This document shows, piece after piece, positions 14,296 to 32,487 of a DNA stretch of 64,000 bases. The first letter of the stretch is position 1. The number at the start of each line of letters is the position of its first letter. Made by a program: the position numbers and the translations under genes. Where the stretch lies: the sequence record NC_049850.1; one strand, given 5' to 3'. The notes below the pieces were generated by a model. The model worked only from the letters and a program-made list of their open reading frames with translations. It was not told the DNA's origin and searched no databases.

Positions 14296-14301
14296 AGCGC
14301 A

Positions 14302-14963: not shown

Positions 14964-14964
14964 C

Positions 14965-16547: not shown

Positions 16548-16681
16548 AATCGAATCCGTTTAGTTAATCCCGCGTCGCGCGGTATGAAAAGGATTGTACG
16601 CGTCTTATTCCCTGCGTCAACAATAACCCCGCGCAATGAGGGGTTATTGTTGAAGCACTCCGTAGAGTGCGGGCCACGCCC

Positions 16682-16879: not shown

Positions 16880-16889
16880 TTCGTTCCCC

Positions 16890-17348
16890 TTAGTTGAAGT
16901 AATCGCGGGCTTGCGCCTTCGCGAAGCGTTCAAGCGATGCATTACCGCGCAGCTTAATTGTTACGTCACTATCGCGCATGCACTCATGTGCGAGCGTGTC
17001 CCGCTTGCCGATCCGTACAACGTCGGATTGTTCAGTGTCGTATTGACCGTAAGCGACGCACGCATCGATGAGAGTGGCCCAATATTCATCAGTTTCGTAT
17101 TCCGGGGCGTCGTCTTCGCGACCGATTACCGACAACACGTCGTGTTCGCGCGGCGTCCCGTGATCGGGGAACGTGACAGACAGCCGCTCAATCCAAAACT
17201 CGTTGTCCGCTAACCCGGCTTCAGAACACGGGGTAATGCGCAGCACGTTTGCATAACCCCAGCCCCGCCGCGCCCTGTCGAGTTCGTAGAAGTAGCCGCC
17301 ATATTCGATGTTGATATCGCCGTGATAAAGAACCTGCGTGCGTTTCAT
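16890..17348 (-). CDS. hypothetical protein (152 aa)
   Basis: promoter TTGACG-N17-CATACT with dyad at 17381-17437. Confidence 0.8.
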   Translation of the reverse strand: MKRTQVLYHGDINIEYGGYFYELDRARRGWGYANVLRITPCSEAGLADNEFWIERLSVTFPDHGTPREHDVLSVIGREDDAPEYETDEYWATLIDACVAYGQYDTEQSDVVRIGKRDTLAHECMRDSDVTIKLRGNASLERFAKAQARDYFN

Positions 17349-17443
17349 GATGTGCCCCGTTAGGCGTTGTCGATGTGTGAAGTATGCCCGGGCCCGTGAG
17401 GCGCGTCAACAGTACCTGAGTATTTTAGTCGGGTATTGGTGCC

Positions 17444-17518
17444 AAAGAAAAGGGGCCTAGGCCCCTTCCCTGTCACTTCCTGCCCGTACCGCTTGCGCGG
17501 GGCGGTCTCACGCCATAC
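17444..17518 (-). ncRNA. candidate small RNA (~75 nt)
   Basis: TTGACA-N17-TACAAT promoter (17525-17553), then CCGC-GCAA-GCGG hairpin and a terminator; only ORF is Met-Ala-stop. Confidence 0.5.
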
Positions 17519-17563
17519 ACTCCCATTGTAGCATAGGCCGCCGCCCCTGTCAAGCCCCGTCCC

Positions 17564-17737
17564 TCAGTCGTCAACCAGACTGAACGCGGGCCGGGTTCGT
17601 ATGTGTGCGGGGGCTTGCTGTGCCGCGTATGCTTCGGCCGCCCGCATGTCGTCTATCGCAGTTTGCAGGTGTTGCTTTTGGGTCTCCAGACTACAAACTT
17701 CCCGCCAGAATTTATAGTTATGCATGTCAATTACCAT
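17564..17737 (-). CDS. hypothetical protein (57 aa, MVIDMHNYKF...)
   Basis: translated by hand; 10-bp inverted repeat TCGTCGGATG/CATCCGACGA upstream. Confidence 0.5.
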   Translation of the reverse strand: MVIDMHNYKFWREVCSLETQKQHLQTAIDDMRAAEAYAAQQAPAHIRTRPAFSLVDD

Positions 17738-17801
17738 ACGCGCTCACTCGTCGGATGAAGGGCCCCCAGTATCCTACATCCGACGAATGCGCGCAAGGGG
17801 G

Positions 17802-18419
17802 TCAGGCCGCTTTTTTCTCGCGCTCCGGGGCCGCCGCTTCGGCCGCCCCCGCCGCCTGCGCTTGTGCCTGCGCCTGCACGTTTCGCGCGTTCACGATCTC
17901 CTGTGCAAGGGACATGAGTTTCCCCGCGATCTCCAGCAATTCCTCCGGGGCGGCCGACGGGGGAACAGTGACGTGCATGTGCGCCGTGTCGAACCGGATG
18001 CCGGGCTTACGGCCGCCGCCCGGCGCGCGTTCGCGCGAGCCCTTGCAGACCGTAACCAGTTCGTTCAGCGTCTTCAGCTTCAGCGGCTCGATTTTCTTGA
18101 TGAGTGCGTCGACGAGCGCTTGCTTTTGCAGATCGCCCGCCCAGCTTCGCACGTCTTCCTCCCCGAGAAAATCGAAAAGCATGATCGCCCCGGCAATGCG
18201 GCGGTTCACGGTTTTCCAGTCGATCCCGGCCGGGGTGTCGCACTTGTAGCCCGCGTCAAAGAAAATCTTTTGAAGCTGGGCGCGGGCCAGACGGCGCGAC
18301 GGGTAGGAATCCAGAATGACCGCGAACCCCACAGCGATTTCGCACTGGAGCGCAACCTGACGGTTGAGCGCCGACTTTGCGATGATTTGCGAGTATGCAC
18401 GAATGTTCGTCTTGTTCAT
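17802..18419 (-). CDS. hypothetical helical protein (205 aa)
   Basis: AGGGGG RBS; terminator 18581-18614 upstream. Confidence 0.8.
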   Translation of the reverse strand: MNKTNIRAYSQIIAKSALNRQVALQCEIAVGFAVILDSYPSRRLARAQLQKIFFDAGYKCDTPAGIDWKTVNRRIAGAIMLFDFLGEEDVRSWAGDLQKQALVDALIKKIEPLKLKTLNELVTVCKGSRERAPGGGRKPGIRFDTAHMHVTVPPSAAPEELLEIAGKLMSLAQEIVNARNVQAQAQAQAAGAAEAAAPEREKKAA

Positions 18420-18625
18420 AAATCCCCCTATCGGTTAAGGGCCTACACATGAGGGGCAGGCTTGCCCCGCACTTTCATGGTAGGACACCCCACAAGAAAA
18501 TCAAGCATATAAGGGTTTTTCTTACTTCTCATATGGTTACAAGTCTGTAAGACCGTATAGGGTCAGGCCCCAATCAGCACAAAAGAAAAGGGGCCCCATA
18601 GGGGGCCCCTTTTTGTACCGGACAG

Positions 18626-18913
18626 TTAAGCCGGTTCGTAATCCATCGAAAACCCGATGATATCGGACGCGAGCAGGACGCGCCGCGTGTTCACGCGATC
18701 CGTGATCGTGTTCCGCTGTCGCGGGTCGGGATTGCTGACGACGACGTTACGGCATTCGTAGAGGATAAACAGCCCGTCTGCGGCATCCGCTTCCGTAGTG
18801 TCGTCGGTGCCTGTCAGGCTGTGTCCGGACGACAGGTGAACGGTTACAACGGCCCCCTCCGGGATACGTGCGATAACCGGATTCGGAATCGTTTCAAGGG
18901 TGATAGCGGTCAT
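18626..18913 (-). CDS. hypothetical protein (95 aa, MTAITLE...)
   Basis: GGAGGA RBS. Confidence 0.7.
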   Translation of the reverse strand: MTAITLETIPNPVIARIPEGAVVTVHLSSGHSLTGTDDTTEADAADGLFILYECRNVVVSNPDPRQRNTITDRVNTRRVLLASDIIGFSMDYEPA

Positions 18914-19318
18914 GGTCTGTTCCTCCCCATTACGCGAGTTTGCCGCGTGCGTCGTGCTTCTCACGGCGTGCCTTGCGTCGCGCCTGTTCACGCGTGCGCA
19001 CCGCGTCGGCATCGCGTGCCGGGGCTTTGCGCGAGATACGTTCGAAATGTGCGTTGCCTTGCATTTGCATGATGGTTCCCTTAGAGAAGGTTTGTTAAGT
19101 AAGTGTGTGTATCATACCGGGTTTAATTTCGTCCGTCAATTAAACCCGTACTAAAATTAGGCTTTTATGCTGCCTGCATGCCGCGCACTTGCCGGATTGC
19201 ATCGCGCACTTGCTCACGTGCGAACGGGAACCGGCGCAGGTTGCGCAGACCGTAATTGATGCCGATAAATTCGATTGCCGTTTCGATATCGCGGAAGGTC
19301 TTCATAGTGAACTCCAAA

Positions 19319-19762
19319 TTAAAAGAAAATGACGGTGCGCGCTTCCTCGTCAAAATCGACGCACATATTCCAATCACGGCCGCGCGACGTGACCATATCG
19401 CATGCGTCAGTCAGCCGCGCGCCCAGACCCCCGGCTTTCAGTTCCGCGCGATCCCAGAAACCCGTGCCGTGACCCTGACTCGTCAAATACAGGTCATGCC
19501 CGAAAGACGCGAAGGGCCATTCGTGCGCACGCGCGCCCCCGAAGTCTTGCGCGCAGCGGTCGCCATAACCGGGGCGCGTAACCGCATCGATGCAATCCGC
19601 ATGATACGCGAGCAGGAACGCACGAACGCCCTTTTCCACGTGTGCGCGCCCTTCCGGAGTCGCTTCGTAGTCGCTCGATTCGTCGGGGCTGTCGGCCCAG
19701 ATAGCCGCGATGATGTAATGCCGAACGATGATATCGATTTGCGCGTCGCTGAAGTGTTGCAT
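19319..19762 (-). CDS. hypothetical phage protein (147 aa) with GHDLYLTSQGHGTGFWDR motif
   Basis: GAGG RBS; promoter TTGACG-N18-TACAAT with dyad at 19804-19861; motif recalls a widespread phage family (not verified). Confidence 0.85.
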   Translation of the reverse strand: MQHFSDAQIDIIVRHYIIAAIWADSPDESSDYEATPEGRAHVEKGVRAFLLAYHADCIDAVTRPGYGDRCAQDFGGARAHEWPFASFGHDLYLTSQGHGTGFWDRAELKAGGLGARLTDACDMVTSRGRDWNMCVDFDEEARTVIFF

Positions 19763-19856
19763 GGTTGCCTCTAGGCGGTTAGTGCTGCGTTGAAAGTGAT
19801 GCTATTGTATGCGGCCCGTTCTAGAGCCGTCAACAATAACCCACTAATTCGAGGGG

Positions 19857-20138
19857 TTATTCTTCGACCCACAAGCTAGGATCGCACGACGTTTCAATCC
19901 GGAAGTGCGACGCATCGCGATAACGGCGCACAAACAGGCGGCCGTGCTGCGCGTAGGTCATGCCTTCAGTCAGCCATGAAACATGGTGCAAATCGCCCGG
20001 CATCGGGGATTTGAGCGGCCCTGCGTGCGTGACACGAACGGGCGTGAATTCGTCAGGGAACAGCCGCGCATCGTAGCGCGTGCGCCGATAGTAGAGGGTC
20101 TTACCATCCACGTAATCCTGAAAGCATGCGGGTTTCAT
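19857..20138 (-). CDS. hypothetical protein (93 aa)
   Basis: AAGGGG RBS; stop inside dyad. Confidence 0.7.
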   Translation of the reverse strand: MKPACFQDYVDGKTLYYRRTRYDARLFPDEFTPVRVTHAGPLKSPMPGDLHHVSWLTEGMTYAQHGRLFVRRYRDASHFRIETSCDPSLWVEE

Positions 20139-20148
20139 GGTCGGCCCC

Positions 20149-20298
20149 TTACTCGGCATCGTACAGTGCGCACGCGTCGGCATAGCTAACGCCTTCGCAT
20201 TCCATGATCGTTTCGATCATGCGTTCGCGCTCGTCGGCTGCTGCCTCGTCGCGCATGTCGTCCATACCGTTCCGCCCCATCATTCCTACTTGTGCCAT
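20149..20298 (-). CDS. small acidic protein (49 aa)
   Basis: leader AACGAACCCGAAGGGGAACGAA-ATG; promoter 20335-20392. Confidence 0.7.
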   Translation of the reverse strand: MAQVGMMGRNGMDDMRDEAAADERERMIETIMECEGVSYADACALYDAE

Positions 20299-20334
20299 TT
20301 CGTTCCCCTTCGGGTTCGTTGAATCGATGGACAA

Positions 20335-20392
20335 ATAGTAACAGCCCCTTAGAGGGGCCGTCAACAATAACCACAAATAATTTGTGGTTATT
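20335..20392 (-). promoter_or_regulatory. early promoter TTGACG-N18-TACTAT with near-perfect 27-bp dyad AATAACCACAAA-TAA-TTTGTGGTTATT
   Basis: read directly. Confidence 0.85.
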
Positions 20393-20636
20393 CGGTGCGG
20401 AACAGGTGCGCGGGCGCGTCGTGCTCGTACCAGTAACGGGCATCGCGTAGCGTGTCATGACTGCCGACCGCGCGGCCGTCGATGCTGACGAGCCATCGAT
20501 TACGCGTAAGCGTCACCATACGCGCATGGGGCGGCCCGTCCGGGCTGTAGTTATCGCGTACCTGTACCAGTGCGCCGGACGGCGTGCAGGCCGCATACAG
20601 CCCGGCCTCTACACGTTTCAGGGGCGGCCGGTTCAT
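20388..20636 (-). CDS. hypothetical protein (82 aa)
   Basis: ATGA overlap with upstream stop; stop inside dyad. Confidence 0.65.
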   Translation of the reverse strand: MNRPPLKRVEAGLYAACTPSGALVQVRDNYSPDGPPHARMVTLTRNRWLVSIDGRAVGSHDTLRDARYWYEHDAPAHLFRTE

Positions 20637-21127
20637 TCCGGTTTCCACGTCGAATAGGCGGCGGTGCGCGCAACGAATTGCGCGATAGCCGCGTCGATCC
20701 GGGCGCACAGCTTCGCGTGGTGCGTTTCGTTGAGGGTCTGCCGACGCTTGCCCCCGGCTATCATGCGCACCCCAGCATGCACCACATACATGGCACCGGC
20801 CGGGCTTTCGACACGCCAGCTAGGCACGTTTCCGACGGTTGCCGTCTGTTCCACTTTCCAGCCCGCAACGTCGGGCCGGGCGGCGGCCGTAGCCGGGTCT
20901 GCGGCCCGCGCGCTCGCGATGGCCGGGGCCGTGCCCTTGTTCACGCGTGCCGACAGGTGCGCGACGTATGCGCGGAACGCATCGCCAATCGTGAACCCTG
21001 CGGGCAGTTCCGGAATCTCGCGCAGCAACGAATCGAACCCCCGCGCCCCTTTCTCGTAATCGAACCCGAGCACGGCCGCGAGCGCATCGCGGGCCGTCGG
21101 CGTCATTTGGTCATAAAGCTTTTTCAT
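20633..21127 (-). CDS. hypothetical protein (164 aa)
   Basis: AAGGGA RBS. Confidence 0.75.
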   Translation of the reverse strand: MKKLYDQMTPTARDALAAVLGFDYEKGARGFDSLLREIPELPAGFTIGDAFRAYVAHLSARVNKGTAPAIASARAADPATAAARPDVAGWKVEQTATVGNVPSWRVESPAGAMYVVHAGVRMIAGGKRRQTLNETHHAKLCARIDAAIAQFVARTAAYSTWKPE

Positions 21128-21140
21128 GGTGTCAAATCCC

Positions 21141-21335
21141 TTAACGGATCATGCGATGTTGGACGGTCACGAATGCTTGCCGGATCGCCCCGGCTTCGGT
21201 TTCCCACTCGTTAGCGGGCATCGGAAAACACGGATGCGACGCGAGCCACAGACCGGACGGCATGCACACGATATCGAACCCGAACGCGGCTACCACTTCC
21301 GCCTGAGACATGGTGTTAAGATCGCGTTGCATCAC
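21141..21335 (-). CDS. hypothetical protein (64 aa)
   Basis: overlapping stop/start. Confidence 0.6.
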   Translation of the reverse strand: MMQRDLNTMSQAEVVAAFGFDIVCMPSGLWLASHPCFPMPANEWETEAGAIRQAFVTVQHRMIR

Positions 21336-21832
21336 GCCCCCTTGGCTTTGCGCGGTGCCCGGCCTGCGAGCATATACACGGTTTCGCGGTACTTGGCGCG
21401 GGCCTTTTTCAGTTCGTTCAGTGCGAACGATTCGGACAAAAGCGGCTCGCCTTCGTCTGCGTTCACTGCCGACAGGATAAGCGCGCCTGCACGGTGTTCA
21501 AGCCTTACGCGAACGCCCGCGCGTTCCACCTGTTCCACGTAGCCGCACGTCAGCGCGTACAGCGTAAGCGAGCCGTCCGCGTTTTTAAGCAATACGTCGG
21601 GGCGCACGCGTTGCACGCGTTGTTTGCCATGACGGCGCGCGAGCCACACGCGATAATGCCCCTCGTCGGTGCGGCCGTCGATATAGCGACGCGCGGCGTC
21701 GAGCGTCATAAACTCCCCATGCGTGACGCCTACAACAGTTCGCGCGTCGCCGTGCATGACGACAAAACCCTCGCGCGTGCTGCCGGTCAAAACGTCGTCA
21801 ACGATAAAGAAACAGTTATGGATTTCGATCAT
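21332..21832 (-). CDS. hypothetical protein (166 aa)
   Basis: AAGGG RBS; promoter TTGACA-N17-TAGAAT with dyad at 21878-21934. Confidence 0.75.
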   Translation of the reverse strand: MIEIHNCFFIVDDVLTGSTREGFVVMHGDARTVVGVTHGEFMTLDAARRYIDGRTDEGHYRVWLARRHGKQRVQRVRPDVLLKNADGSLTLYALTCGYVEQVERAGVRVRLEHRAGALILSAVNADEGEPLLSESFALNELKKARAKYRETVYMLAGRAPRKAKGA

Positions 21833-21929
21833 GGTCAGCCCCTTTAGGCCGGTCTTTACTGCGTTGAAAGTGATTCTATTCTATGGGGCCTGCTGCCCCG
21901 TGTCAACAATAACCCCAGACTTTACTGGG

Positions 21930-22286
21930 TTATTCGTTGTCCATCATCCCGAGCCGGGCCCGGATCATTGACAGGCGTTCCGATACGGGCACGGCACGGC
22001 CGCCGCCCAGACGAACCCATCCCGCGCCAGACGGGCACGCGTCAATGTCATGCACCCCGGAATAAGCGGCGCAAATGTCGGCCGCACTGTTAGCCTGTAG
22101 CAGCGTATAACCGGCCGTGCGCGCGTGCTGCGCAGCATCCCGGCCTGACTCCCACACGCGAGCATGCGCCCGGCCCGTCTTCTGTTCACCCTCCCCTACA
22201 AACTGCGCGGGGCCCTGCGCGACGACACGCAGACGATAGCGCGTCGCGCCTTCGTGTTTCTGACGCATCACATACACTTGTTGCAT
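21930..22286 (-). CDS. hypothetical protein (118 aa)
   Basis: promoter TTGACG-N17-CATACT at 22322-22378; terminator 22384-22412 upstream. Confidence 0.7.
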   Translation of the reverse strand: MQQVYVMRQKHEGATRYRLRVVAQGPAQFVGEGEQKTGRAHARVWESGRDAAQHARTAGYTLLQANSAADICAAYSGVHDIDACPSGAGWVRLGGGRAVPVSERLSMIRARLGMMDNE

Positions 22287-22428
22287 ACCCTTAAAACTCC
22301 CGTTCGTGAATCGATGAGTGCAGTATGTGCGCGTGTGCCCGTACCGTCAACAGTACCAGACTAATTAACTCAGGTATTAGGGCAAAAGAAAAGGGCCCCT
22401 AGGGGCCCTTTTGCGAGTGCGCGACGGA

Positions 22429-22836
22429 TCAACGATAGAGGTATTCCGTCCCCTCAATATCGATGGTCGAATAATCGACGCTCAGATTTTTGGCGGTCGC
22501 GTCCCAATCGATGACGAGATAGGACGGGATTTCGCGCGGCATGTCCCCGATATCGGACACCAATTGTTCACAATACTCCGTGAAGTGGCTGTCACGAATC
22601 AGGCAGCCCGGATACCAATTACCCTCATATTGATGGTCGCCGCCTTCCCCGTTCAGTTCGGTCAGGATTTTTTCAAGCTGCTCCAGTTCGACCGCTTCGT
22701 CCGGGTTTTCGTCCGCCCAATCTGCGGCCCGGTCGTCGTCGCTGTCGTGCGTGTCGCGCTCGTCTTTCAGTTCGTCGTAACGGTCGCAAATGTCTGACAC
22801 GTTGATGATATCGGCGCTCAGGTCAAGATCGGACAT
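22429..22836 (-). CDS. highly acidic, ArdA-like putative antirestriction/DNA-mimic protein (135 aa)
   Basis: about 38 D/E vs 9 K/R by hand count; C-terminal YLVIDWDATAKNLSVDY resembles ArdA YFDYEAFARDL motif; promoter 22871-22927. Confidence 0.6.
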   Translation of the reverse strand: MSDLDLSADIINVSDICDRYDELKDERDTHDSDDDRAADWADENPDEAVELEQLEKILTELNGEGGDHQYEGNWYPGCLIRDSHFTEYCEQLVSDIGDMPREIPSYLVIDWDATAKNLSVDYSTIDIEGTEYLYR

Positions 22837-22956
22837 GGTGTTTACTCTGCTGTTTGGTTAAGGTGTTACCAGTATAGAGGGGAGAATTCCCCGCGTCAAG
22901 AATAACCCCATATAGTATAGGGCTATTTTTGACGGGGCCCGAAAGGGCCCGGGCCG

Positions 22957-23346
22957 TTATTCGGCGTCGTCTTCCTCGTCGGCCGTTTCGGCCGCGTGTT
23001 CCGCGTCGGGCACTTCCGACGTGCGCCCGAGCGATTCAGCCAGTTCGCGGAACCATACGGCGTCGCACCCATCCATGTCCGCATATTCGGCCGCCAGTTC
23101 CGCAAACGTGCCTTCACGCCCAGCGTAAGGCGACGTGTAGAACGATTCCAGCGCACCATCGCGCAAGATCGCCGCTTGAAAATCGGCGTTCGTCAGGAAT
23201 ACGAGCCCGCTATGCGTGTTGAACGCCGCTTGTACCTCTTCGGTGCTGAATTCTTCGGGCAGGCCGCCATCGTTCCATGCTTGCAGGATCGCGATGAGTT
23301 CGTCCCGCTCGCGACGCCCCATGTTTGCCATGTTGGTAAGCGACAT
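22957..23346 (-). CDS. acidic hypothetical protein (129 aa)
   Basis: AAGGA RBS; promoter TTGACA-N17-CACAAT at 23380-23436. Confidence 0.8.
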   Translation of the reverse strand: MSLTNMANMGRRERDELIAILQAWNDGGLPEEFSTEEVQAAFNTHSGLVFLTNADFQAAILRDGALESFYTSPYAGREGTFAELAAEYADMDGCDAVWFRELAESLGRTSEVPDAEHAAETADEEDDAE

Positions 23347-23433
23347 TCGTTTGATTCCTTATTCGTTCAGAGAGATTACATTGTGCCGGGTAGTGTTCTC
23401 TCTGTCAACAATACCCGAGTGCGGCGCGGGGTC

Positions 23434-23808
23434 TTACTTCGTCAACGCGCCCGACAGGCTTTTGACGCATGCGCCGTAAGCGGGCTCGCGTGCATCGTCG
23501 GGGCTCGCGCCCTTGAATGCGGGGCTGCTGTAAATCAGGGCCGCGTTACCCTTCATCAGATCGACAAGCGGACGCGCGACGCCCGCAAACGTGCGTTCGA
23601 TATCGGCCTGCGTTTCCGCGAGCGTCACCCCGCTATCACGTGCGCGAACCGACAAAACCGCAACGTCAGCAACGCCGTTACACGTCTGCGAAATGTTCGC
23701 CTTTTCTTCCGCCGTGAGCGGCGCAGCCTGCGCCGGAACCCCAGCCCCGCACGATGCGGCAGTCGCGAGCGCAGCGAACGCGACTGCGGAAACGGTACGT
23801 TTGAACAT
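23434..23808 (-). CDS. exported protein with Sec-type signal peptide (124 aa)
   Basis: MFKR + hydrophobic core + A-x-A; GGAG RBS; promoter 23848-23905. Confidence 0.7.
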   Translation of the reverse strand: MFKRTVSAVAFAALATAASCGAGVPAQAAPLTAEEKANISQTCNGVADVAVLSVRARDSGVTLAETQADIERTFAGVARPLVDLMKGNAALIYSSPAFKGASPDDAREPAYGACVKSLSGALTK

Positions 23809-23889
23809 GCTTGATTCTCCGGTTATGCGTCTGTTGAAAGTGAGTCTATTGTATGCGGGCCCGTGTAGGCCCGTCAACAATAAACCCCT

Positions 23890-24246
23890 TTACCGTAGGG
23901 TCTTCGCGATCCGACGCGCCCAGCGTCGAGCATAGCCCGCGCGTCGGCATCCGTGCGGATGAGTCGGCCCCGTGCCCTGCCCAAGACAATACAGATAGGC
24001 GCGAAGGGCTGCATTGATGCTTTCCGGGGTTGCACCCAGTTCACGCGCAAGGTTTTTGCGCCTCAGCCTGAGCAACGCCATAAGGCTGTCTGCCTCATAC
24101 GTGTAACGTTCGTGTTTCAGGCCCGCATGCGCCATGATGCACGAATCGATTGAGACACGGGAGCGCGGTTGCATGGCGGCGGCCCAGCCCGGAACCGGGG
24201 CCTTTCTTTGTCGCCAATATTCGGCGTGTTCACCTGTCACGATCAT
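23890..24246 (-). CDS. hypothetical protein (118 aa)
   Basis: ATGA overlap with upstream stop. Confidence 0.6.
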   Translation of the reverse strand: MIVTGEHAEYWRQRKAPVPGWAAAMQPRSRVSIDSCIMAHAGLKHERYTYEADSLMALLRLRRKNLARELGATPESINAALRAYLYCLGQGTGPTHPHGCRRAGYARRWARRIAKTLR

Positions 24247-24539
24247 GACTTGAGTCCCCGCACCAAACGGCAGACACCCATGTACTGACGGCGACAATCG
24301 GCCAGCCACGCGGCCCATGCTTCGGGGTATTCCCGGCCCCAGCCGATATAGAACCCGATCAAATCCTGATCGCGCCTTTGATTGCAGGACAGGGCGTCCG
24401 ACAACGCGAATTTATCCACGTCGAGCCGTTCCAGTTGATCGCGGATCGAATCGACCAACATGCACCCCGAGCCACGCACCCATGCATAAAACTCGAATTC
24501 GTTGATCGTGTCATCAGCAAACTTCACTTCGTTTTCCAT
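24243..24539 (-). CDS. hypothetical protein (98 aa)
   Basis: leader AACGAACCCGAAGGGGAACGAAG-ATG; promoter 24575-24631. Confidence 0.7.
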   Translation of the reverse strand: MENEVKFADDTINEFEFYAWVRGSGCMLVDSIRDQLERLDVDKFALSDALSCNQRRDQDLIGFYIGWGREYPEAWAAWLADCRRQYMGVCRLVRGLKS

Positions 24540-24626
24540 CTTCGTTCCCCTTCGGGTTCGTTGAGCGTGAAACCAGTATAGACGGGCACGCGGCACACGT
24601 CAACAATAACCCCGTGCTCTATAGGG

Positions 24627-25049
24627 TTAAATCAAAATCATTTCCGTGTAACCCAGCGTCCGGGCAATTGCCAGCAGCGCATCATTCCCCGCGCCCTGTT
24701 CGCACGACTCAAACGCGATTGGTGCGCCCGCGTCGTCGCGAATCTCGATACCTGCCGACACTAGGGCCCGGTCGAACGCGAGCCCGAACGATTCACGTCC
24801 CGCGCTTGTCTTCGCCACGCCGTAACCCGACGTGGTAGCGGCCCCGCAACGAACCCACAGCGACGCGTAGAGGTTCGTTGCGGACGTGCTGCGCGATGCC
24901 CAGTAACGCAATTCGCACACGTGTTCAAGCTTACCCGTTACCGGGTTAAGGGCAACGAGGGAAACGGTGCGGATGCGTTCCTTCGTCCCGTCGTGCTGCT
25001 GCGCGTTATCCTGTTCACCCTTAAACGTTACTTGCATACGTTGCCTCAT
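24627..25049 (-). CDS. hypothetical protein (140 aa)
   Basis: ATGA overlap. Confidence 0.7.
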   Translation of the reverse strand: MRQRMQVTFKGEQDNAQQHDGTKERIRTVSLVALNPVTGKLEHVCELRYWASRSTSATNLYASLWVRCGAATTSGYGVAKTSAGRESFGLAFDRALVSAGIEIRDDAGAPIAFESCEQGAGNDALLAIARTLGYTEMILI

Positions 25050-25549
25050 TCCGCCGCATTCTTGCCAAGGTGTTCCGCGAGCGGTTCACCATTTTTCATC
25101 AGCGTAACCGACTCCCCGGCCGTGCGCCCCGTACCCTCGTCGGACGTGATGACCCATGCATCATAGGCTGCATACGCGGCCGTCCGGTCGTCGCCTTCGT
25201 ACACAGTGCCGACGTTACCGACGATGACGAGATAGCCCGTGTTCGTCGGGTTCGCGATGCCTTCAATGACTTCGATAGCTTGCTCGCGCGTGCTGTAGCG
25301 GTGGAACTCGCCCAGCGTTTCCACGTTGCCGGTTTCCCCGTCGATCTTGCGCACCGAAAATTTCGTGATCCCCGACGGGTTCGTTTCTTGCGAAACGAAA
25401 TAGTACGAGCCGAAAATCAGCCAGCCCCGGGCCGGAAGTCGGGTCTTGAAAAACTTCATTGCATCAGCATCGAACCAGTGCCCGTTAGGATTCTTTTCGG
25501 CGTAGTGCGCGCGAATCGTGGACATGGTGACGGTCTTAGCGTTTTTCAT
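25046..25549 (-). CDS. hypothetical phage protein (167 aa) with GHWFDADAMKFFKTR motif
   Basis: AAGGGG RBS; promoter TTGACA-N17-CATAAT with dyad at 25586-25642. Confidence 0.8.
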   Translation of the reverse strand: MKNAKTVTMSTIRAHYAEKNPNGHWFDADAMKFFKTRLPARGWLIFGSYYFVSQETNPSGITKFSVRKIDGETGNVETLGEFHRYSTREQAIEVIEGIANPTNTGYLVIVGNVGTVYEGDDRTAAYAAYDAWVITSDEGTGRTAGESVTLMKNGEPLAEHLGKNAAE

Positions 25550-25819
25550 TTGGTGCCCCTTTAGGCGTCGTGATTGGATGACTGAATTATGCGCGGGCCC
25601 GTCTGGCGTGTCAACAATAACCCCAAAATTTTTATGGGTATTCAGGCAAAGAAAAAGCCCCGGCTGGGGCTTATAGGATGCGGGCCGCCTGTATGGCCGC
25701 CGCTCGCGTTCTGGCCGTCCCGTGAGACTGGCCCCGCACGTCGAAAATTTCCCATAGGCGACGGTCGCCTACGCGCTGAACATAGCCGCGCAGCGTTCCC
25801 CGCTCGTCATAAACGGGAG

Positions 25820-26497
25820 TCACGACCCGCGCTCGTCTAGCACTTCCGCCGCTTGCGTAATCGACAGGTTCGGCACGCCGTCAACCGTCCACGCTTCGAC
25901 TGTCTGCCCGGCAACGCGCGACAGTCTTACGGTTACTTCGATGCCGCGCAACCGGCCCGAGCGCGATGCCCCGGCCGCCGCCGCTACGTCGGCCTTTTCC
26001 GCGAAGCGATCGACCAGCGATTCTGCAAAATCGACCAGTTCACGGGCCGCCGCGAGCGGGATAGCCTTATGCGGTTGCGGGGCCGCGACGCGCGCAACCT
26101 CGTTTTCGGCGTCGCGTTGATGGATGAACGCGCCCCGACCGTCAACATACCAGTTACAGACAATCCAATCACGGGCCCGCGAATAGATCGCGCAGCACGT
26201 GACAGGCACGCCCCCGATATCTGCGGTTTCCGCGTGGTCGTCCTTCGACGTGCGGGCAATCTCGCGCGCGTCTTCCGCGAGTTTCGACACTTCGGCCGAA
26301 ATTTGATCGATGGTCATTACTTGTCCGTTCAACATGGTTTCGAATTCCATTTCATTTTCGAGAAAATACAGTTCGGGGGTGCCCGCGATAAGATGCCGGG
26401 CCGCCCGCGCTTGCTCGGCAGGCCATTCCGGATTATCGGGGAATGCGCGCCGGGCCCGGGCTAGTTCGATCCGCAAGTGTAGCGCGAGCGGTGACAT
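25820..26497 (-). CDS. multi-domain hypothetical protein (225 aa)
   Basis: TAATG overlap with upstream stop. Confidence 0.65.
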   Translation of the reverse strand: MSPLALHLRIELARARRAFPDNPEWPAEQARAARHLIAGTPELYFLENEMEFETMLNGQVMTIDQISAEVSKLAEDAREIARTSKDDHAETADIGGVPVTCCAIYSRARDWIVCNWYVDGRGAFIHQRDAENEVARVAAPQPHKAIPLAAARELVDFAESLVDRFAEKADVAAAAGASRSGRLRGIEVTVRLSRVAGQTVEAWTVDGVPNLSITQAAEVLDERGS

Positions 26498-26982
26498 TAT
26501 GCGACGAGCCGCTTAACGGGTTCAACGCTGCGCGGGTGATAAACCCGGCGCAGTTCAGCCAGCAAGGGCGCGTATTCTTCCGGGGTTGCCAGCTTCAAAT
26601 CGCGGCCCAGACTGCGCGACACTTCCCCATGCTGCCCCGTGTGCATGTAGGACATCACGTTACCCGGGTTGCAGTCTTTCGCGCTGTTACAGAAAAACGC
26701 GATTACGTAACCCTCGCGAAACTTGCGGAACACGACACGCAACGCGGGCGGCGCAAACTTCGCGGCCCCGTAGCGCTGCGCGTCTTCGGACAGGGCGCGC
26801 ACTCCCGAGGGGTCATGTGCATCCCGCGAGCCGTGAACGTCGACCAGATCGCCGCTGCGCTTATCGAATTGAAACGTGATCGGAACGCGGGGGCCAAACC
26901 CGGGCCATTTGCGCGCGAACGCTTCAACGTCTGCGGTCGTGCACTGCACGGTAAAGAATGCCCCATTATCGTATGCTCGCAT
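26497..26982 (-). CDS. two-domain hypothetical protein (161 aa) with SYMHTGQH...ATPEEYAPLLAEL motif
   Basis: GAGG RBS; promoter 27024-27080. Confidence 0.8.
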   Translation of the reverse strand: MRAYDNGAFFTVQCTTADVEAFARKWPGFGPRVPITFQFDKRSGDLVDVHGSRDAHDPSGVRALSEDAQRYGAAKFAPPALRVVFRKFREGYVIAFFCNSAKDCNPGNVMSYMHTGQHGEVSRSLGRDLKLATPEEYAPLLAELRRVYHPRSVEPVKRLVA

Positions 26983-27078
26983 GGTTGCCTCTAGGCTGTT
27001 AGTGCTGCGTTGAAAGTGAAACCAGTATAGGACTGGGCCGCCGCCCCGTCAACAATACCCGACTAAATCGCGGGGTCT

Positions 27079-27450
27079 TTATTCCGTGCCACGCAAGCGA
27101 CGCACAATTTCCGCGTGCGAAAGACCCGACATAAGGCGGTCAATTTCCGCTTGCTCGTCTGCCTGCCGTCGCTCGTCTTCTGCTGCCTGCCTAGCGAGTT
27201 CTGCGCGCCACTCTTTCAGGGCCCGCGCGCCCTTTTCCGTAGTGCGCGGATCAACCGACAGATAGAGCGTGACTTCGCGCCCCTCCCGGTCAACGAAAAC
27301 GGGCGTGCCGCTATTTTTCACCACTACCGTGAAATGCGACTGAACCAGACGGTTTACGGTGTCGGCATCGATAGCACCGCCAAACGATCCGCCCACAACC
27401 TTACGCGTGTTGTCGCTGTAGAGACGCGTGTGATAGCTGATATTGCGCAT
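27079..27450 (-). CDS. hypothetical protein (123 aa)
   Basis: promoter TTGACG-N17-CATACT with dyad at 27484-27540. Confidence 0.75.
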   Translation of the reverse strand: MRNISYHTRLYSDNTRKVVGGSFGGAIDADTVNRLVQSHFTVVVKNSGTPVFVDREGREVTLYLSVDPRTTEKGARALKEWRAELARQAAEDERRQADEQAEIDRLMSGLSHAEIVRRLRGTE

Positions 27451-27527
27451 GTCAAACCCTGTAGGTGCGTTGAAAGTGATACCAGTATGGGGGCGGGCCG
27501 CCGCCCCGTCAACAATACCCGAGTAAA

Positions 27528-27872
27528 TTAATCGGGTTTGTCGTCCTGCACTTGTGCGCCCGGCCGCGCCAGCTTTTCCAGCTTGGCAAGCAACGAAACC
27601 GCGTCCTTAACGTAGCAGGTGCACGCGGGCCGCTTCGCCTCATACTCGGCCACTGCCTGAGCATGCGCCGCCCGGTCTCCGTCCTTCACACGGCCGCCCG
27701 GCCCGCGCTTAGGGCCGCCCCCGAAAATCTGTTGAGCGTGTCGGTTGTGAACGGCAACCGCGCAGCTATAGGCGTGCATCGGATGCCGGATAACCGGGCC
27801 AAAGATCGCGAGCACGTCCCGCGCTAAATCGGCTTGCCCGTCGTCGTATGCTTGATTGTATGCGTCTTGCAT
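27528..27872 (-). CDS. hypothetical protein (114 aa)
   Basis: AAGGGG RBS. Confidence 0.65.
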   Translation of the reverse strand: MQDAYNQAYDDGQADLARDVLAIFGPVIRHPMHAYSCAVAVHNRHAQQIFGGGPKRGPGGRVKDGDRAAHAQAVAEYEAKRPACTCYVKDAVSLLAKLEKLARPGAQVQDDKPD

Positions 27873-27881
27873 GATGCCCCC

Positions 27882-28202
27882 TTATGCGCGGTATATGGAA
27901 ACGAAACCGGGCGTGCGGTCGCGGTCGTCGGCCGCGATGCCGATATGGTAGGCCCCGCGCGCCCCCTCTTTCATACCCTCGCCCACAGCAGCGGACACGG
28001 CGCGACGCGTGATACCGTTATCGATGCGTGCATGCGTGCAACCGTGCGCGACTACCGCGTATTGTACGGCGCGGGCCGCCAGCCAAGCGGCCGGGTGATT
28101 GCCGCTAATCTCGTACAGCAGACGGCCCCGGTACGTGACGCGTGCGGCACGGCCCCCGCGTGTGCCGTGCATTTCGTAGGTTTCAATGGTTGCGGTTTTC
28201 AT
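27882..28202 (-). CDS. hypothetical protein (106 aa), first gene of the leftward early arm
   Basis: AGGGG RBS; TTGTGC-N18-TATAAT promoter 28238-28267. Confidence 0.7.
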   Translation of the reverse strand: MKTATIETYEMHGTRGGRAARVTYRGRLLYEISGNHPAAWLAARAVQYAVVAHGCTHARIDNGITRRAVSAAVGEGMKEGARGAYHIGIAADDRDRTPGFVSIYRA

Positions 28203-28293
28203 GATGCGCCCCTATCGGTTTTGGTTTGGATGCACGCATTATATACAGGCGACGGGTGCGCGCACAATACCCCTAAAAAGTTTTTGGTTTTTG

Positions 28294-28699
28294 TTGACGC
28301 GGGCCCGGAACCGTGTAGAATGGGAACCGGTGAGCAACACGGGCAAACGCAGCCGCGACGCGGTGGGGAACCCGGAGCCCGGCCCCTGCCCGGTCGCGCA
28401 AACGTTTGCGCACGATGCACGGAATACCCGACAAAAACGCTAGGGTACTATTGACGCGACCGCGAATAGGGCGCACAATTCGATTCATGGTGAACGCGAC
28501 GCGGACACCGAACCCGGCCGATTCGGCCAATGTCGAAAAAAGTGAAAAAACTTGTTGACATGCTGCAAATCCGGGTTCATAATGCTTTCCATGGTGACGC
28601 GACAGCGACGCCCCAGCCCCGGACACGGGGTCATCCCGGGGCCCGCGACAGCGACACCCGCGAAAATCGCTTGACGTGCAGGGCCGGGGCCGCTATAGT
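28294..28699 (+). promoter_or_regulatory. four tandem rightward sigma70-type promoters
   Basis: TTGACG-16-TAGAAT (28294-28321), TTGACG-17-CACAAT (28451-28479, dyad 28423-28449), TTGACA-17-CATAAT (28555-28583), TTGACG-17-TATAGT (28671-28699). Confidence 0.75.
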
Positions 28700-28860
28700 G
28701 GCGTCACTGGGCCGAAACGGCTCAGGGCAGGGCGGGGGCCTATCCCGTCTGACGCACTGGAGCCCGTATTGACGATCAAGCACACGACCGCGCACAGCAG
28801 CACCAGCACGACCGTAGCACCCAGCGTCACCCGCGCTCGCGTCTTCTAACGCGACACATA

Positions 28861-28899
28861 GCCTCCCCACGCCCTGAATAAGGGATAGGGAGGCTTTTC
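28861..28899 (+). terminator. probable terminator GCCTCCC...GGGAGGC-TTTT
   Basis: 7-bp outer stem with T tract; long loop. Confidence 0.5.
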
Positions 28900-29001
28900 T
28901 TCGTCCATTTCCCCTTGACATCAAGTTGCTCAATTTTTAGGCAGTCCGAAAATCCCGGCAGGGCAGGGGAGGGCGCTTGCCCAGAAAACCGCCCTTCCCC
29001 A

Positions 29002-29393
29002 CAAAAACTTTTGAGGATTCCGAAATTCTTTCGAAGCACCCTTCCACAAGTTTTTCCTCGGGCAAAAAGTTTCGAAGCCAGTCAAAAACTTTGACCTCTA
29101 AAGCAAAAATAAAAAAGTTTGGACGCATTCAAAGGTTTTGTCAAAAGATTTTGGCGAAATAAAAAGATTTTAGAGAAGCCCATCTAAAAAGTTTCAAACT
29201 ACCAAAATCTTTTGAGTTGCCTCAAAACTTTAAATTTCCCACCTAAAGATTTTCAGTCCGCATCAAAAACTTTTGACGGATTTCAAAAACTTCAATACGC
29301 AGTCAAAATCTTTGGAACGCACCAAAAACTTTTGACGAGTTCAAAAACTTTTGACCGCACCGGTAAGTTTTACCTGTCTCAAAAAGTTTTTGG
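29002..29393. repeat. AT-rich array of about 18-20 near-palindromic units (consensus TCAAAAACTTTTGA), ~20-bp period
   Basis: units start at e.g. 29263, 29283, 29303, 29322, 29341; non-coding. Confidence 0.85.
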
Positions 29394-29497
29394 TGGCGGC
29401 GAAATAATTCGCAACACACTGTTACAATATTTTCGTTGGTACAAATATTTTTCCATGCTATAGTACGCGCACACCAACGGAAATAGGCGTACGAATC

Positions 29498-30469
29498 ATG
29501 AGCGGTATATACAAGATAAGCTTCAACGGCAACAACAAGCGCGACTGCTACATAGGGCAGGCGCAGGATTTCACTGCGCGTATGTACAACCACAGGCACC
29601 ATCTACGCCGGGGGACTCACTTTGCACCCAAGCTACAGCGGGCTTACGACGAGAACGGGCACGAGAACATGCGCGTCGAGATTCTTGAGTTGTGCGAAGT
29701 AGAAGTACTCACCCAGCGCGAGCAGCATTATCTTGATACCATTAAGCCGCGCTACAACCCCACGCTGATTGCATCAGAACCTCCCATGCGCGGAAAAGCG
29801 CATAGCGACGACGCTAAGCAAAGAATCAGCGACGCGGTGCGGAAGTTCAGCCACAAGCAAGAACTGGCGATTGTCAGCAGTCACATAGGGCTTGGATTCA
29901 GCACTACAACCATCGCACTTCAGTTCGGCTGCTCAGAGCCTACAATACGCACAATCCTGCGCAAGCACGGAATCGATACGGGGGCGTCTCGCAGGCCCAA
30001 AGGTAGAGCTAAGAAGGCAGGCCGTAAGGTCAAATTTGACGCGGCTCAGGAGCAGGCCATCGCGCGCAGCTACCAGTCGGGTAAAAGCACTGCTGAGGTG
30101 GCTCAAGAATTTGGCTGCTCCCAACCTACGGTGGTGAAGATGCTGGATAAACTAGGCATTGAGCGCAGGCGTGGCCAGTTCAACGAAACCGAACAACAGG
30201 ACATCGTTCGCCAGTACAAGAATGGCAAGACCACAGAGGACATTGCCGCACAGTATGGATGCAATCACTCCACCATCGGGGACGAGTTGCGCCGGGCTGG
30301 CGTCGAGTTGCGAGGCCGAGGCCGCAAGCGTTTGCTCACGGATAAGCAAGAACGTCAAGCCCTTGCGCTTCGTGACAAAGGCAGGTCAGTCAGTGAAGTG
30401 GCGGCCAAGTTTGGATGCAGTCCGCAGGCAATGCGCAACATTCTCAACAAACACCGGGAGTCCGCATGA
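29498..30469 (+). CDS. free-standing GIY-YIG endonuclease with NUMOD3-like motif and four HTH repeats (323 aa)
   Basis: SGIYKI...CYIGQAQDFTARMYNH...REQHYL...RYN; RGKAHSDDAKQRIS; four FGCS/YGCN HTH units. Confidence 0.9.
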   Translation: MSGIYKISFNGNNKRDCYIGQAQDFTARMYNHRHHLRRGTHFAPKLQRAYDENGHENMRVEILELCEVEVLTQREQHYLDTIKPRYNPTLIASEPPMRGKAHSDDAKQRISDAVRKFSHKQELAIVSSHIGLGFSTTTIALQFGCSEPTIRTILRKHGIDTGASRRPKGRAKKAGRKVKFDAAQEQAIARSYQSGKSTAEVAQEFGCSQPTVVKMLDKLGIERRRGQFNETEQQDIVRQYKNGKTTEDIAAQYGCNHSTIGDELRRAGVELRGRGRKRLLTDKQERQALALRDKGRSVSEVAAKFGCSPQAMRNILNKHRESA

Positions 30470-30765
30470 ACGTTATCATCCACGATCAAGATTTTCTTGA
30501 CTACCCGATCATGGTAGTCGACACCGAGCTTCTGGAGAACACGCTGGACCCTGAGACCACGGCGTTCGAGCGCGCGCAGGAGGCGCTGGCGCGCAAGGAG
30601 GTGGTGCTACTCGTCAAGCCCGAGCACATAGGACGCGTGTTGTCCAAAGTCCACAAACATGTGACAGCCGTCCATAACACGGTACAGCTTGAAGGGGACA
30701 CGGAAGCCCGGCTCCAGCGCGCGCTGGCCTCGGTTGGTCTCGATCTCCATAGCTCCACCTACTGA
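30466..30765 (+). CDS. hypothetical protein (99 aa, MNVIIHDQ...)
   Basis: ATGA overlap with endonuclease stop. Confidence 0.7.
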   Translation: MNVIIHDQDFLDYPIMVVDTELLENTLDPETTAFERAQEALARKEVVLLVKPEHIGRVLSKVHKHVTAVHNTVQLEGDTEARLQRALASVGLDLHSSTY

Positions 30766-30781
30766 CCACGACACCAAAAGA

Positions 30782-30818
30782 AAACCCCACATACCGAAAG
30801 GTATGTGGGGTTTATTTT
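30782..30818. terminator. bidirectional terminator AAACCCCACATACC-GAAA-GGTATGTGGGGTTT
   Basis: 14-bp perfect stem between convergent genes. Confidence 0.85.
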
Positions 30819-30957
30819 CGTCCGCGCAAAACAAAAAACCGAGCGCCGGGCCCGGTTCTTGATCAGTGCATGGACACCCATCTGATGACCATGACCGCGA
30901 CTACTGCGCACGCTACTGCTACTACTGCCAGAATGTCGTCGACGCGAGGCGGCATGT

Positions 30958-31287
30958 TCAGTGCCGGTCGAAGAACACGGGGTCCGTACAACCCTCTTCC
31001 AGCTTCTGTGCCACGTAGGCTTTGCCACGCCGCGTTGCCCCCACCACCTCCATGTTCTTGACTGCACCCTCCTGCACCAATTCGCGTGCGATGCGGGCCA
31101 CGGAACCCACGTCTCCGGCTGTCGCCACCACCATGCGCACTTGAAGCGGCACGGGCCGGAAGGGCGACGAGTATGGCAGATCGACGTTTCCGACGATCAG
31201 ATAGTTGACGATGTGGTCGCGGTAGTTCGTGCCCTTATAGACCGTGCCATCGCGGCCCACTCCGTCAAAACGATTGCTGATCAACAT
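30958..31287 (-). CDS. hypothetical protein (109 aa)
   Basis: AAGGAG RBS; GTAGTAAATA-class promoter upstream. Confidence 0.75.
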   Translation of the reverse strand: MLISNRFDGVGRDGTVYKGTNYRDHIVNYLIVGNVDLPYSSPFRPVPLQVRMVVATAGDVGSVARIARELVQEGAVKNMEVVGATRRGKAYVAQKLEEGCTDPVFFDRH

Positions 31288-31746
31288 GCTGCTCTCCTTC
31301 TCTATTCTCAGGTGAATGGTAGCCAGAATACTAACGTATTTACTACATCACGTCAACGCCAAAATAAAACCCCGGGAAGCCGAAGCCGCCCGGGGTTCTT
31401 ATCTACTTCTCGTCTCGATCAACCGCGCGGACGAATGTCCTGCGGTGACAAGCTGCGTCCGTGAACAGGTCGACGGTCGCTACGGACAATGCCCGCTTTC
31501 ATACGTTCTCCAAGAGGTGCACAGAGTTCAGTTTGAAGAGAGCCCCACGCTCGTTCAGGAGTCGGAACAATCGGTTAAACGCCGATGTTCGTGAGCGCGC
31601 GTCCACGCTCTCCCGCGTTTCAGTGCCGTCAATGACGACCATGAACTCGAACAGCTTATGCATCATGATGGGGCCTCCGTGGTGTTTACATTCTGTACTC
31701 TTTGAGTGGTTGAGGGGAGCTACTAACGAGTTGCAGTGTTACGCGC

Positions 31747-32487
31747 TCAGGCCGTCGCGTCTTCGTTGACCTGATCGATAACCATGCGCAGGTACGCAGG
31801 GTCATACGAGTACAGTTGCTTCCAGTACTCGATGGCTTGCTGCTTGTCGGCGCGGCTGATGCCAGCCTGCACCATCTTGTCGGCAAACGACTTGGGGATC
31901 GGGGCACGCACGATGGATGCGACCATCTTGTTGTCGACGACGACCGCGTTGTCCGATGCGTGGCTCACGACCTGCACCTTCTCCGCGTTGGCGGCGATGG
32001 CAAAGCCGTAGTCCATGTCGCCCGACTGGCTGACGTAGGCCACGAACTCGCCCGGCACAGCCGAGGCCGTCGTGATGTGGCGCAGACCCGGAACGTCGGT
32101 GCGCCGCTTCGTGCTCGCGTGGATCAGTTCGCTCAGGTCTTCGTTGCCGTGGCGTGCCAGATACGTGCCGCCCTTGCCGGTCTTCACTTCCCAGAGGCTG
32201 TCGTCAGCGTCCGAGGTCATGATGTTCGAGGAACCGACAACGCGGTAGCTGGCGCGCAGTTCTTGCGGGTCGACGACGCGGACTTCACGGTTCGCGCGCA
32301 TGAAGCCGACAGCAACGCCTGCGCGGACTTCACGGAACGAGTCTTCGACCGGGGCGGCCTTCGCCTCGAACTTCTCGGTCAGCGACGCACGCAGCGTCTC
32401 TTTGTTGAATTTGCCGGTGAACGCGATGACGACACGCGCCAGCTTCGGGCTCACGAGATCGTAGTCAGTAATCGAAACGGTTTGCAT
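31747..32487 (-). CDS. putative virion structural protein (246 aa)
   Basis: AAGGA RBS; AATTTAA motif upstream; position at end of morphogenesis module. Confidence 0.7.
   Translation of the reverse strand: MQTVSITDYDLVSPKLARVVIAFTGKFNKETLRASLTEKFEAKAAPVEDSFREVRAGVAVGFMRANREVRVVDPQELRASYRVVGSSNIMTSDADDSLWEVKTGKGGTYLARHGNEDLSELIHASTKRRTDVPGLRHITTASAVPGEFVAYVSQSGDMDYGFAIAANAEKVQVVSHASDNAVVVDNKMVASIVRAPIPKSFADKMVQAGISRADKQQAIEYWKQLYSYDPAYLRMVIDQVNEDATA

Follow-up and report, generated by a model that had tools for sequence, protein, structure and literature searches.

A phased array of near-palindromic repeats between the promoter-rich and structural gene blocks of Burkholderia phage BcepSaruman, tentatively read as an origin-type element

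Replication origins of several lytic phages sit at the border between early and late genes. The lambda origin, which is curved, holds four phased, dyad-symmetric sites for the O protein, and the R6K gamma origin is built from seven tandem 22-bp iterons. The primary origin of T7 consists of tandem promoters followed by an AT-rich stretch, whilst the lactococcal phage c2 uses non-coding repeats located where early and late genes meet, and depends there on an early transcript. To our knowledge, no replication origin has been mapped in the jumbo phage group that contains RSL1, Saruman and Matilda. Here we describe an array of ~20 near-palindromic units at positions 29000–29393 of Burkholderia phage BcepSaruman (MK552140.1, 263,735 bp); the window that we analysed comprises bases 1–64000 of this genome, and the remaining genome was scanned too. 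The array is real and statistically overwhelming; it is a unique cis element, maintained in evolution, for which the record has no annotation. It is iteron-like in kind, and of the original prediction made for this DNA from its letters, the origin half is our best guess, whilst the terminus and bent-DNA parts are unsupported. BcepSaruman, a jumbo myovirus that infects Burkholderia cenocepacia, is a relative of Ralstonia phage RSL1 and has no phage nucleus (10.64898/2026.10.21.760668). The segment with which its record begins is terminal in the related phage Matilda, which has defined ends in terminal inverted repeats and expresses its terminal genes earliest (10.64898/2026.10.21.760668). The same preprint leaves open how linear genomes with inverting ends begin to replicate, how they reach the inside of the cell and how they are packaged (10.64898/2026.10.21.760668).

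The array comprises 19–20 near-palindromic units with the consensus tCAAAAAcTTTTGAc, as read from the sequence. A near-invariant core of AAA(A)-N2-TTT is flanked by partly conserved C, G and A positions, and the units are separated by GC-rich spacers of 5–8 bp whose sequence is free to vary. Searching the window with CAAAAACTTTTG (≤ 2 mismatches) returned 20 matches, 18 of them within 29002–29392, against 3.2 ± 1.9 in shuffled sequence (none of 100 shuffles reached 20). A position matrix derived from the units identified 19 strong units at 29000–29393 and three weaker, AT-rich ones extending to 29455; additionally, a variant unit, GGTAAGTTTTACC, occupies the sole 38-bp gap at ~29362, bringing the total to ~20. 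The original prediction had described about 20 phased near-palindromes with a period of ~20 bp, including one near 29362, and each of these particulars was borne out. The best-fit period is 19.95–20.0 bp (Rayleigh R = 0.76) and the median dyad-to-dyad spacing 19.25 bp, with irregular spacings of 12.5, 24.5 and 28.5 bp also present. Three to six of the seven base pairs in each unit are symmetric. Tandem Repeats Finder detected the best-preserved part alone (29259–29355, period 19). The array thus has what iteron origins have, namely several copies of one motif phased with the helical repeat.

CRISPR arrays consist of identical repeats and unique spacers of similar length (~25–40 bp), usually accompanied by cas genes. 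With spacers of only 5–8 bp, degenerate units and no cas genes nearby, a CRISPR was rejected, and the earlier remark that the absence of unique spacers spoke against one was correct. An identity as a coding region or RNA gene was likewise rejected: no credible reading frame crosses the array, and it contains no tRNA and matches no Rfam family. Two-turn phasing, an invariant core, semi-conserved flanks and free spacers together fit a series of protein-binding sites; a coding or RNA element would not be expected to look like this.

Within the genome the array has no counterpart. The 400-bp window with the lowest guanine–cytosine (GC) content of all 263.7 kb begins at 29051 (34.5 % GC; runner-up, 47.0 %), whilst 400-bp averages across the genome are mostly 55–63 %; the abrupt AT-rich block in GC-rich DNA that had been noticed beforehand is therefore the genome's minimum. 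There is no separate, uninterrupted AT-rich segment in the array, as each A/T core of 9–10 bp is flanked by GC-rich spacers. In the other 200 kb the motif occurs at chance level (one to three matches per 50 kb, the same as in shuffles). Furthermore, this is the sole non-coding tandem array of the genome, all others lying within genes and having periods divisible by three. Of these others, only the long acidic repeats of genes _174 (genome 100.4–101.3 kb) and _241 (142.4–143.1 kb) are sizeable; they are made of GAC/GAA-rich units with periods from 9 to 123 bp.

The evidence that the array is maintained comes from an uncultured relative. Homologues of the structural gene _074 are common in metagenomes, and one with 78 % identity lies on the contigs L021 and L026, which represent a phage that recurs in hundreds of samples; a 229-kb contig of this type exists. 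The phage represented by these contigs shares _060–_075 with Saruman in the same order, at 35–78 % protein identity, and is the only relative examined that shares this block. Its equivalent locus is a gene-free gap of 1.2 kb, the left part of which is ~70 % identical to the promoter region of Saruman, and the equivalent site carries an array of 19 units spaced 20–22 bp apart. All of these units read AAAAAsTTCACC where Saruman has AAAAAcTTTTGA, such that the outer half-site has changed; the first three are direct copies, after which the orientation alternates. No copy of this motif was found outside the array in 20 kb of L021. A variant contig of the same phage type lacks exactly 80 bp, corresponding to four units. 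On comparison of the two sequences, the retention of site, length, unit number, period and A-tract/T-tract core alongside a changed half-site is the strongest evidence that the array has a function and exerts it as DNA. The half-site change is most simply explained by a binding protein whose specificity has drifted, as a change concerted across all units is what would be expected if the sites co-evolve with the protein that binds them.

The relative itself is found on > 700 contigs from many samples (L021, L026, L027 and L028; JGI 3300076526 and 3300076431; Logan SRR30941120 and SRR32344499), including records labelled Escherichia coli and Salmonella enterica; this points either to a very wide distribution or to recurring contamination. 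Many of these contigs end in the array or close to it, and the internal 80-bp duplication of the array accounts for such breaks.

The position of the array is as distinctive as its structure. The record annotation is empty between 28203 and 29497, placing the array in a gene-free gap of 1.3 kb. On its left are ~65 small genes of unknown function, all reading leftward (1–28.2 kb), and on its right a two-gene plus-strand island is followed by tail tube, sheath and other structural genes that read leftward. We found 28 sigma-70-like promoters in 8.5–28.4 kb, against 7.4 ± 3.0 expected; 25 of these lie on the sense strand and nearly all have the form TTGACG-17-TAnAAT. In the structural block (31–50.9 kb) there is no enrichment, with three such promoters against 4.5 expected. 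This contrast in promoter density puts the array at the meeting point of a block transcribed by the host polymerase, and presumably early, and the late genes.

For anatomy of this kind, the best-precedented role in a lytic phage is a replication origin. By analogy, an origin-type array of ~20 protein-binding sites is therefore our best guess for its function, albeit one that we hold tentatively. Favouring it are the uniqueness, the two-turn phasing and the conserved architecture of the array, its location between the promoter-rich early block and a late block without promoters above chance, the four conserved tandem promoters that point at it, and the observation that no other region of the genome is origin-like; the divergent strand switch at 112.5–113.1 kb, where cumulative GC skew has its minimum, is free of repeats and was rejected as a rival origin. 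The array would be a cis-acting DNA element offering ~20 sites to a sequence-specific, phage-encoded protein, probably a dimer given that the units are dyad-symmetric. These sites, which follow each other at two turns of the helix and lie in the DNA that melts most readily in the whole genome, may be filled cooperatively to yield one long nucleoprotein filament or superhelix, which would open or mark the DNA for loading of the replisome. Such an origin would be of the iteron-plus-unwinding-element kind, set at the border of early and late transcription, and the adjacent strong early promoters may activate it. Protein binding and a start of replication at the array are what we infer, whereas its existence, uniqueness, 20.0-bp period, extreme AT-richness, border position and conserved architecture are shown by the analysis.

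The features surrounding the array are as follows.
27882..28202, minus strand: gene _069, which opens the leftward early block.
28294..28699, plus strand: four tandem sigma-70-like promoters at 28294, 28451, 28555 and 28671 (promoter scan).
28860..28901, plus strand: interrupted hairpin followed by TTTTCTT (sequence reading and L021 alignment).
28915..28975, plus strand: conserved block upstream of the first unit (sequence, repeat D9 and conservation in L021).
29396..29464, plus strand: AT-rich tail with three weak motif-like units (matrix and promoter scan).
29498..30469, plus strand: free-standing GIY-YIG homing endonuclease (domain searches).
30466..30765, plus strand: gene _071 (99 aa), whose association with the array is conserved.
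30782–30813, both strands: strong bidirectional terminator hairpin (perfect 14-bp stem, T-runs on both strands).
30834–30860, minus strand: second terminator (terminator scan).

Throughout 8500–28400, almost all small genes or gene pairs are served by a TTGACG-17-TAnAAT promoter of their own, and several of these promoters are embedded in hairpins (TGACGGCCCC...GGGGCTGTTA) that double as terminators of the upstream gene. The four tandem promoters beside the array are of this same early-block type; all are aimed at the array and they lie ~100–160 bp apart. The promoter scan that called them returned six promoter-like sites, against 1.8 ± 1.4 expected, and the hexamers of the four are kept in L021 despite an identity of ~70 % and non-triplet indels. 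As no conserved reading frame follows them, they probably yield short non-coding RNAs, and the stretch from 28290 to 28905, which ends in a conserved hairpin, resembles a small locus for early non-coding RNA. It also contains a palindrome, GCGCAAACGTTTGCGC, at 28396–28411 that is conserved in L021. From its sequence, the closing hairpin (28860..28901), which lies between the promoter cluster and the array, looks like a terminator; its inner stem is CCCT/AGGG in Saruman and CCCC/GGGG in L021, a compensatory change. The automatic scan missed this hairpin because its loop is above the limit of the scan. Further towards the array, the conserved block holds a TTGACAT box without a convincing −10 element and then a G-rich run, GGCAGGGCAGGGGAGGGCG (28957–28975). 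The promoter status of the box is uncertain, given that the promoter scan did not call it. The G-rich element is present in two copies (28723–28746 and 28959–28982).

With early-type promoters upstream on the same strand, the array could alternatively be transcribed and act as a long leader or non-coding RNA, in which 20 A-rich/U-rich, hairpin-forming repeats would titrate an RNA-binding protein, for instance Hfq, or control _071. The plus-strand RNA does fold better than shuffles (z = −4.0), although any palindromic repeat gives such a score. In addition, the terminator-like hairpin stands between the promoters and the array, Rfam holds no match, and in the relative paired units usually share their central base on one strand, which would produce a G–G mismatch in RNA and thus shows no selection for pairing. 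Taken together, we regard a role as RNA as very unlikely.

On the other side, the AT-rich tail contains a sigma-70-like promoter, TTGGTA-17-TATAGT (29436–29464), that serves the endonuclease gene. The tail is missing in L021/L026, whose array borders directly on the promoter of the _071 homologue, and is probably part of the inserted endonuclease cassette and outside the array. The endonuclease has ~4 tandem modules of ~50 aa of helix-turn-helix (HTH) type (HTH_23/HTH_7) after its catalytic domain, and the end of its reading frame, with the stop codon, shares 4 bp with the start of _071. It sits between the array and _071 in both Saruman and BcepSauron, whilst the L021-type relative represents the empty site; judged from this alignment, the endonuclease gene is a later insertion beside the array. 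It was rejected as the partner of the array, as the relative carries the array without it. The terminators at 30782–30860 close the late structural operon and the plus-strand island.

Gene _071 was also considered as a source of the binding protein. Its homologue in L021 (110 aa, 57 % identical) directly abuts the array, and no homologues beyond these phages were found in 5.8 billion clustered proteins or in a full HMMER scan. The protein is acidic (net charge −7), and its AlphaFold2 model is a small alpha/beta fold (predicted local distance difference test score, pLDDT, 82) without a significant structural match. As an acidic orphan whose predicted fold does not have the look of a DNA-binding protein, _071 is unlikely to be the array binder. 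The other neighbours of the array have no recognisable domain.

This arrangement bears on a second possibility, that the array is a regulatory or architectural site at which a protein of the phage or the host coats 400 bp. In this role it might insulate early from late transcription, serve as an operator or sink for the early promoters and _071, or recruit RNA polymerase through A/T tracts that resemble UP elements. Consistent with such a function, it lies at the early/late border between dense early promoters and the promoter of _071 (or of the endonuclease), and array and _071 have been kept together in both lineages. There is also an isolated, high-scoring copy of the motif, CTAAAAAGTTTTTGGT, at 28272–28288, just upstream of the first tandem promoter. 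However, this copy is not conserved as a motif in the relative and may be due to chance, and it was rejected as a conserved operator. Moreover, no regulator gene is adjacent, the motif marks no other promoter in the genome, and 20 operators for one or two promoters would be without close precedent. A regulatory or architectural array that is no origin is, in our estimation, rather unlikely.

In a megablast search, 27000–32000 matched the BcepSaruman record at 100 % identity and at unchanged coordinates, and BcepSauron at 97.9 %; the arrays of these two phages are 100 % identical. This identity was rejected as a sign of constraint: only one base differs in the whole of 28425–30430, a tract that ends at the 3' end of the GIY-YIG gene, and it is set between hyper-divergent flanks, with 108–175 differing positions per 500 bp in _068 and _069 on the left. 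From the pattern of differences, the near-identity of 28425–30430 looks like the result of recent, endonuclease-driven gene conversion.

We also scanned for similar arrays elsewhere. Among IMG/VR viral contigs, BcepSauron alone has a comparable array; the other contig with several hits, L011, was rejected as an 18-bp-period coding repeat. A scan of genomes gave no match in Burkholderia or other betaproteobacteria, and thus no sign of a host-derived site. The pattern used for metagenomes was two adjacent Saruman-type units, and most matches were single or 18-bp coding repeats. The 18-bp-period matches on L011, L067, L093, L112 and L150 are coding repeats of hexapeptide type on the opposite strand, and as such false positives for the motif. 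Three unrelated contig families did contain intergenic arrays of 16–18 units with TCAAAAGTTTTG-like or CAAAAACTTTT-like cores and a period of 20–23 bp.
L099, 9659–10010 (same array in L062 and L106): similar array on an archaeal-type chromosome of 46 % GC.
L084, 3958–4400: similar array on a metagenomic contig.
L072, 760–1130: similar array on a metagenomic contig.

The three contig types are the archaeal-type chromosome (46 % GC), a bacterial one (36 % GC) and one of 26 % GC with few reading frames. One array lies between genes for leucyl-tRNA synthetase and deoxyhypusine synthase on what is apparently an archaeal chromosome, and the neighbours of another, in a bacterium, are glutamine synthetase and a STAND-TPR gene. 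As the search selected for this core, the similar arrays are not evidence of homology, but that the same architecture recurs is notable. If the archaeal-type and bacterial A5-N-T4 arrays of 20–23 bp period were related, they would represent a widespread, undescribed class of chromosomal element.

The occurrence of such A5-N-T4 arrays in unrelated cellular intergenic DNA, without a common neighbour, is what might be seen if the Saruman array were instead an expansion-prone, AT-rich minisatellite, acting as a spacer or as easily melted DNA and homogenized by unequal recombination. The exact 80-bp difference in copy number between contigs of the relative would fit this, as would the satellite-like manner in which all units changed together between the lineages. 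Against it, phage genomes are compact, the core is nearly invariant whilst the spacers are free, and the site, the length of ~400 bp, the unit count and the period are all kept between lineages whose proteins share only 35–78 % identity. We consider a minisatellite without sequence-specific function quite improbable.

The shape of the DNA was examined with a wedge model, as a test of moderate strength. Known curved and straight behaviour was reproduced in the controls (end-to-end/contour ratios of 0.59 for A5N5, 0.45 for A4T4 and 0.996 for T4A4). For the array the ratio was 0.94–0.96 per 150 bp and 0.916 per 400 bp (window median 0.913), whilst an idealized array gave 0.95–0.99; both are predicted to be nearly straight. 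Since the model with its controls predicts straight DNA, intrinsic curvature was rejected, and the bent A-tract DNA of the original prediction finds no support in either the actual or the idealized array. The accompanying idea that the units lie on one helical face holds only if the helical repeat is ~10.0 bp per turn, at which the phase coherence of the units is R = 0.65, against R = 0.25 at 10.5 bp per turn.

A number of observations weigh against an origin at this site. With ~20 sites, the array has several times more than characterized phage origins. Apart from the inserted endonuclease, no gene for an initiator or other recognisable DNA-binding protein is found beside it, and the replication genes are 100–180 kb away. 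DnaA boxes (TTATCCACA, ≤ 1 mismatch) are absent within 4 kb of the array, and their total in the window is below chance. Between the promoter cluster and the array stands the terminator-like hairpin, and the TTGACAT box has no good −10 element, so that any transcription into the array is putative. The identity to Sauron, lying within a gene-conversion-like tract, is not evidence of constraint. In RSL1, BCSR5 and five metagenomic loci, the _074 homologue is followed by different gene content with no AT-rich tract or array, making the element specific to the Saruman lineage. Cumulative GC skew, a check put forward with the original prediction, has no inflection at 29 kb and turns at ~105–113 kb and ~234 kb. 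These turning points coincide with strand switches, so that the skew tracks gene orientation; as it follows transcription, it cannot locate an origin and is uninformative. A replication origin thus stands as the best single guess by analogy, set against a locus with no initiator gene, DnaA box or GC-skew switch.

Some of the same observations could be accommodated by a checkpoint for DNA entry. In phage T5, a large, untranslated, repeat-rich region marks the inner border of the terminal block transcribed by the host polymerase, and in T5 relatives this injection-stop region is sometimes split by a homing endonuclease gene (10.1101/866236). By comparison, the first 29 kb of Saruman would enter, pause at the array and resume entry after early proteins are made; the pause could be imposed by a membrane-near or virion protein that binds the array, or alternatively the inward tandem promoters could pull DNA in as in T7. 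The layout of the locus matches that of the T5 region (10.1101/866236), and the array lies 11 % into the record, against 8 % in T5. Moreover, the record start falls in the segment that is terminal in Matilda, whose terminal genes are expressed earliest, and promoter density marks the 1–28 kb block as early. Conversely, the paired DnaA boxes and the long inverted repeats of the T5 signal are both absent at the array, two-step transfer is unreported for this phage group, and no A1/A2-like genes turned up, though no search was aimed at them. Overall, we judge an entry checkpoint to be improbable.

Two further roles are suggested by arrays that are wrapped by oligomeric proteins. The defining trait of type II and III centromeres is a set of ten to twenty phased sites for a dimer that wind into a superhelix, and the two-turn period matches the repeat length of pSK41 parC. 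The array could on these grounds form a segrosome that positions or partitions phage DNA, as at parC, tubC and sopC. Yet the phage is lytic, and no gene for ParA, ParM, a TubZ-like protein or an adaptor is adjacent or present in the genome annotation, making a centromere-like site highly unlikely. The last role, a pac site or terminus recognized by the small terminase subunit, formed the other half of the original prediction. Some pac sites, such as that of SPP1, are known to contain phased repeats that an oligomer wraps. Here, the terminase gene is 116 kb away (145344–147602), and 29 kb separate the array from the record start, the counterpart of the terminal segment of Matilda; the ends of Matilda lie elsewhere, in terminal inverted repeats. 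Metagenome contig breaks at the array are explained by the 80-bp duplication. Given the distance of the terminase and the position of the record ends, together with nothing that links the small terminase subunit to the array, a packaging role is disfavoured, and we consider it the least likely of all the readings.

Whichever function applies, the array is the single outstanding non-coding feature of a 264-kb genome, and one that can be deleted or cloned in order to address replication, entry and packaging. It could be used as bait for the protein that reads it, and the Saruman-type and L021-type arrays provide a natural specificity swap with which candidate binders may be tested. In its most far-reaching form, our interpretation would make the array a landmark of a new kind in a jumbo phage whose linear genome can have its ends in either orientation: the master origin of the Saruman/Matilda group, or an entry checkpoint delimiting the 29-kb early segment. 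The protein that reads it would have changed its specificity from one lineage to the other (TTTTGA to TTCACC); we would not bet on this reading, which strikes us as doubtful.

Compared with known systems, the array is built like the centromeres of R1 and pSK41 (parC), pBtoxis (tubC) and F (sopC), at which ten to twenty phased sites take up a small dimeric protein that polymerizes into a superhelical complex; the repeat of pSK41 parC, too, is 20 bp long. However, plasmid centromeres lie directly upstream of a partition operon, and no partition genes accompany the Saruman array. The resemblance to the T5 injection-stop region is one of setting, as both are untranslated regions rich in repeats or palindromes, at the inner edge of the host-polymerase block, conserved relative to their neighbours and interrupted by an endonuclease in some members. 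In construction they differ: the T5 region, which lies within a 10-kb terminal repeat, is pieced together from long repeats of different kinds and has paired DnaA boxes, whilst that of Saruman is one simple 20-bp array with no DnaA boxes. With regard to the lambda and R6K origins, the array departs from both in having 19–20 units rather than four to seven, no separate unwinding element and no adjoining initiator gene, and from the curved lambda origin in having no predicted intrinsic bend. Nevertheless, it shares with them repeated sites about two turns apart, AT-richness and restriction to a single locus, and with lambda the dyad symmetry of the sites. Finally, the AT-rich regions of the T7 and c2 origins are short and are not made of 20 phased palindromes, and in Saruman a terminator-like hairpin intervenes; in common with these origins, however, the array is a non-coding, AT-rich region at the early/late border with strong tandem promoters upstream that are aimed at it.

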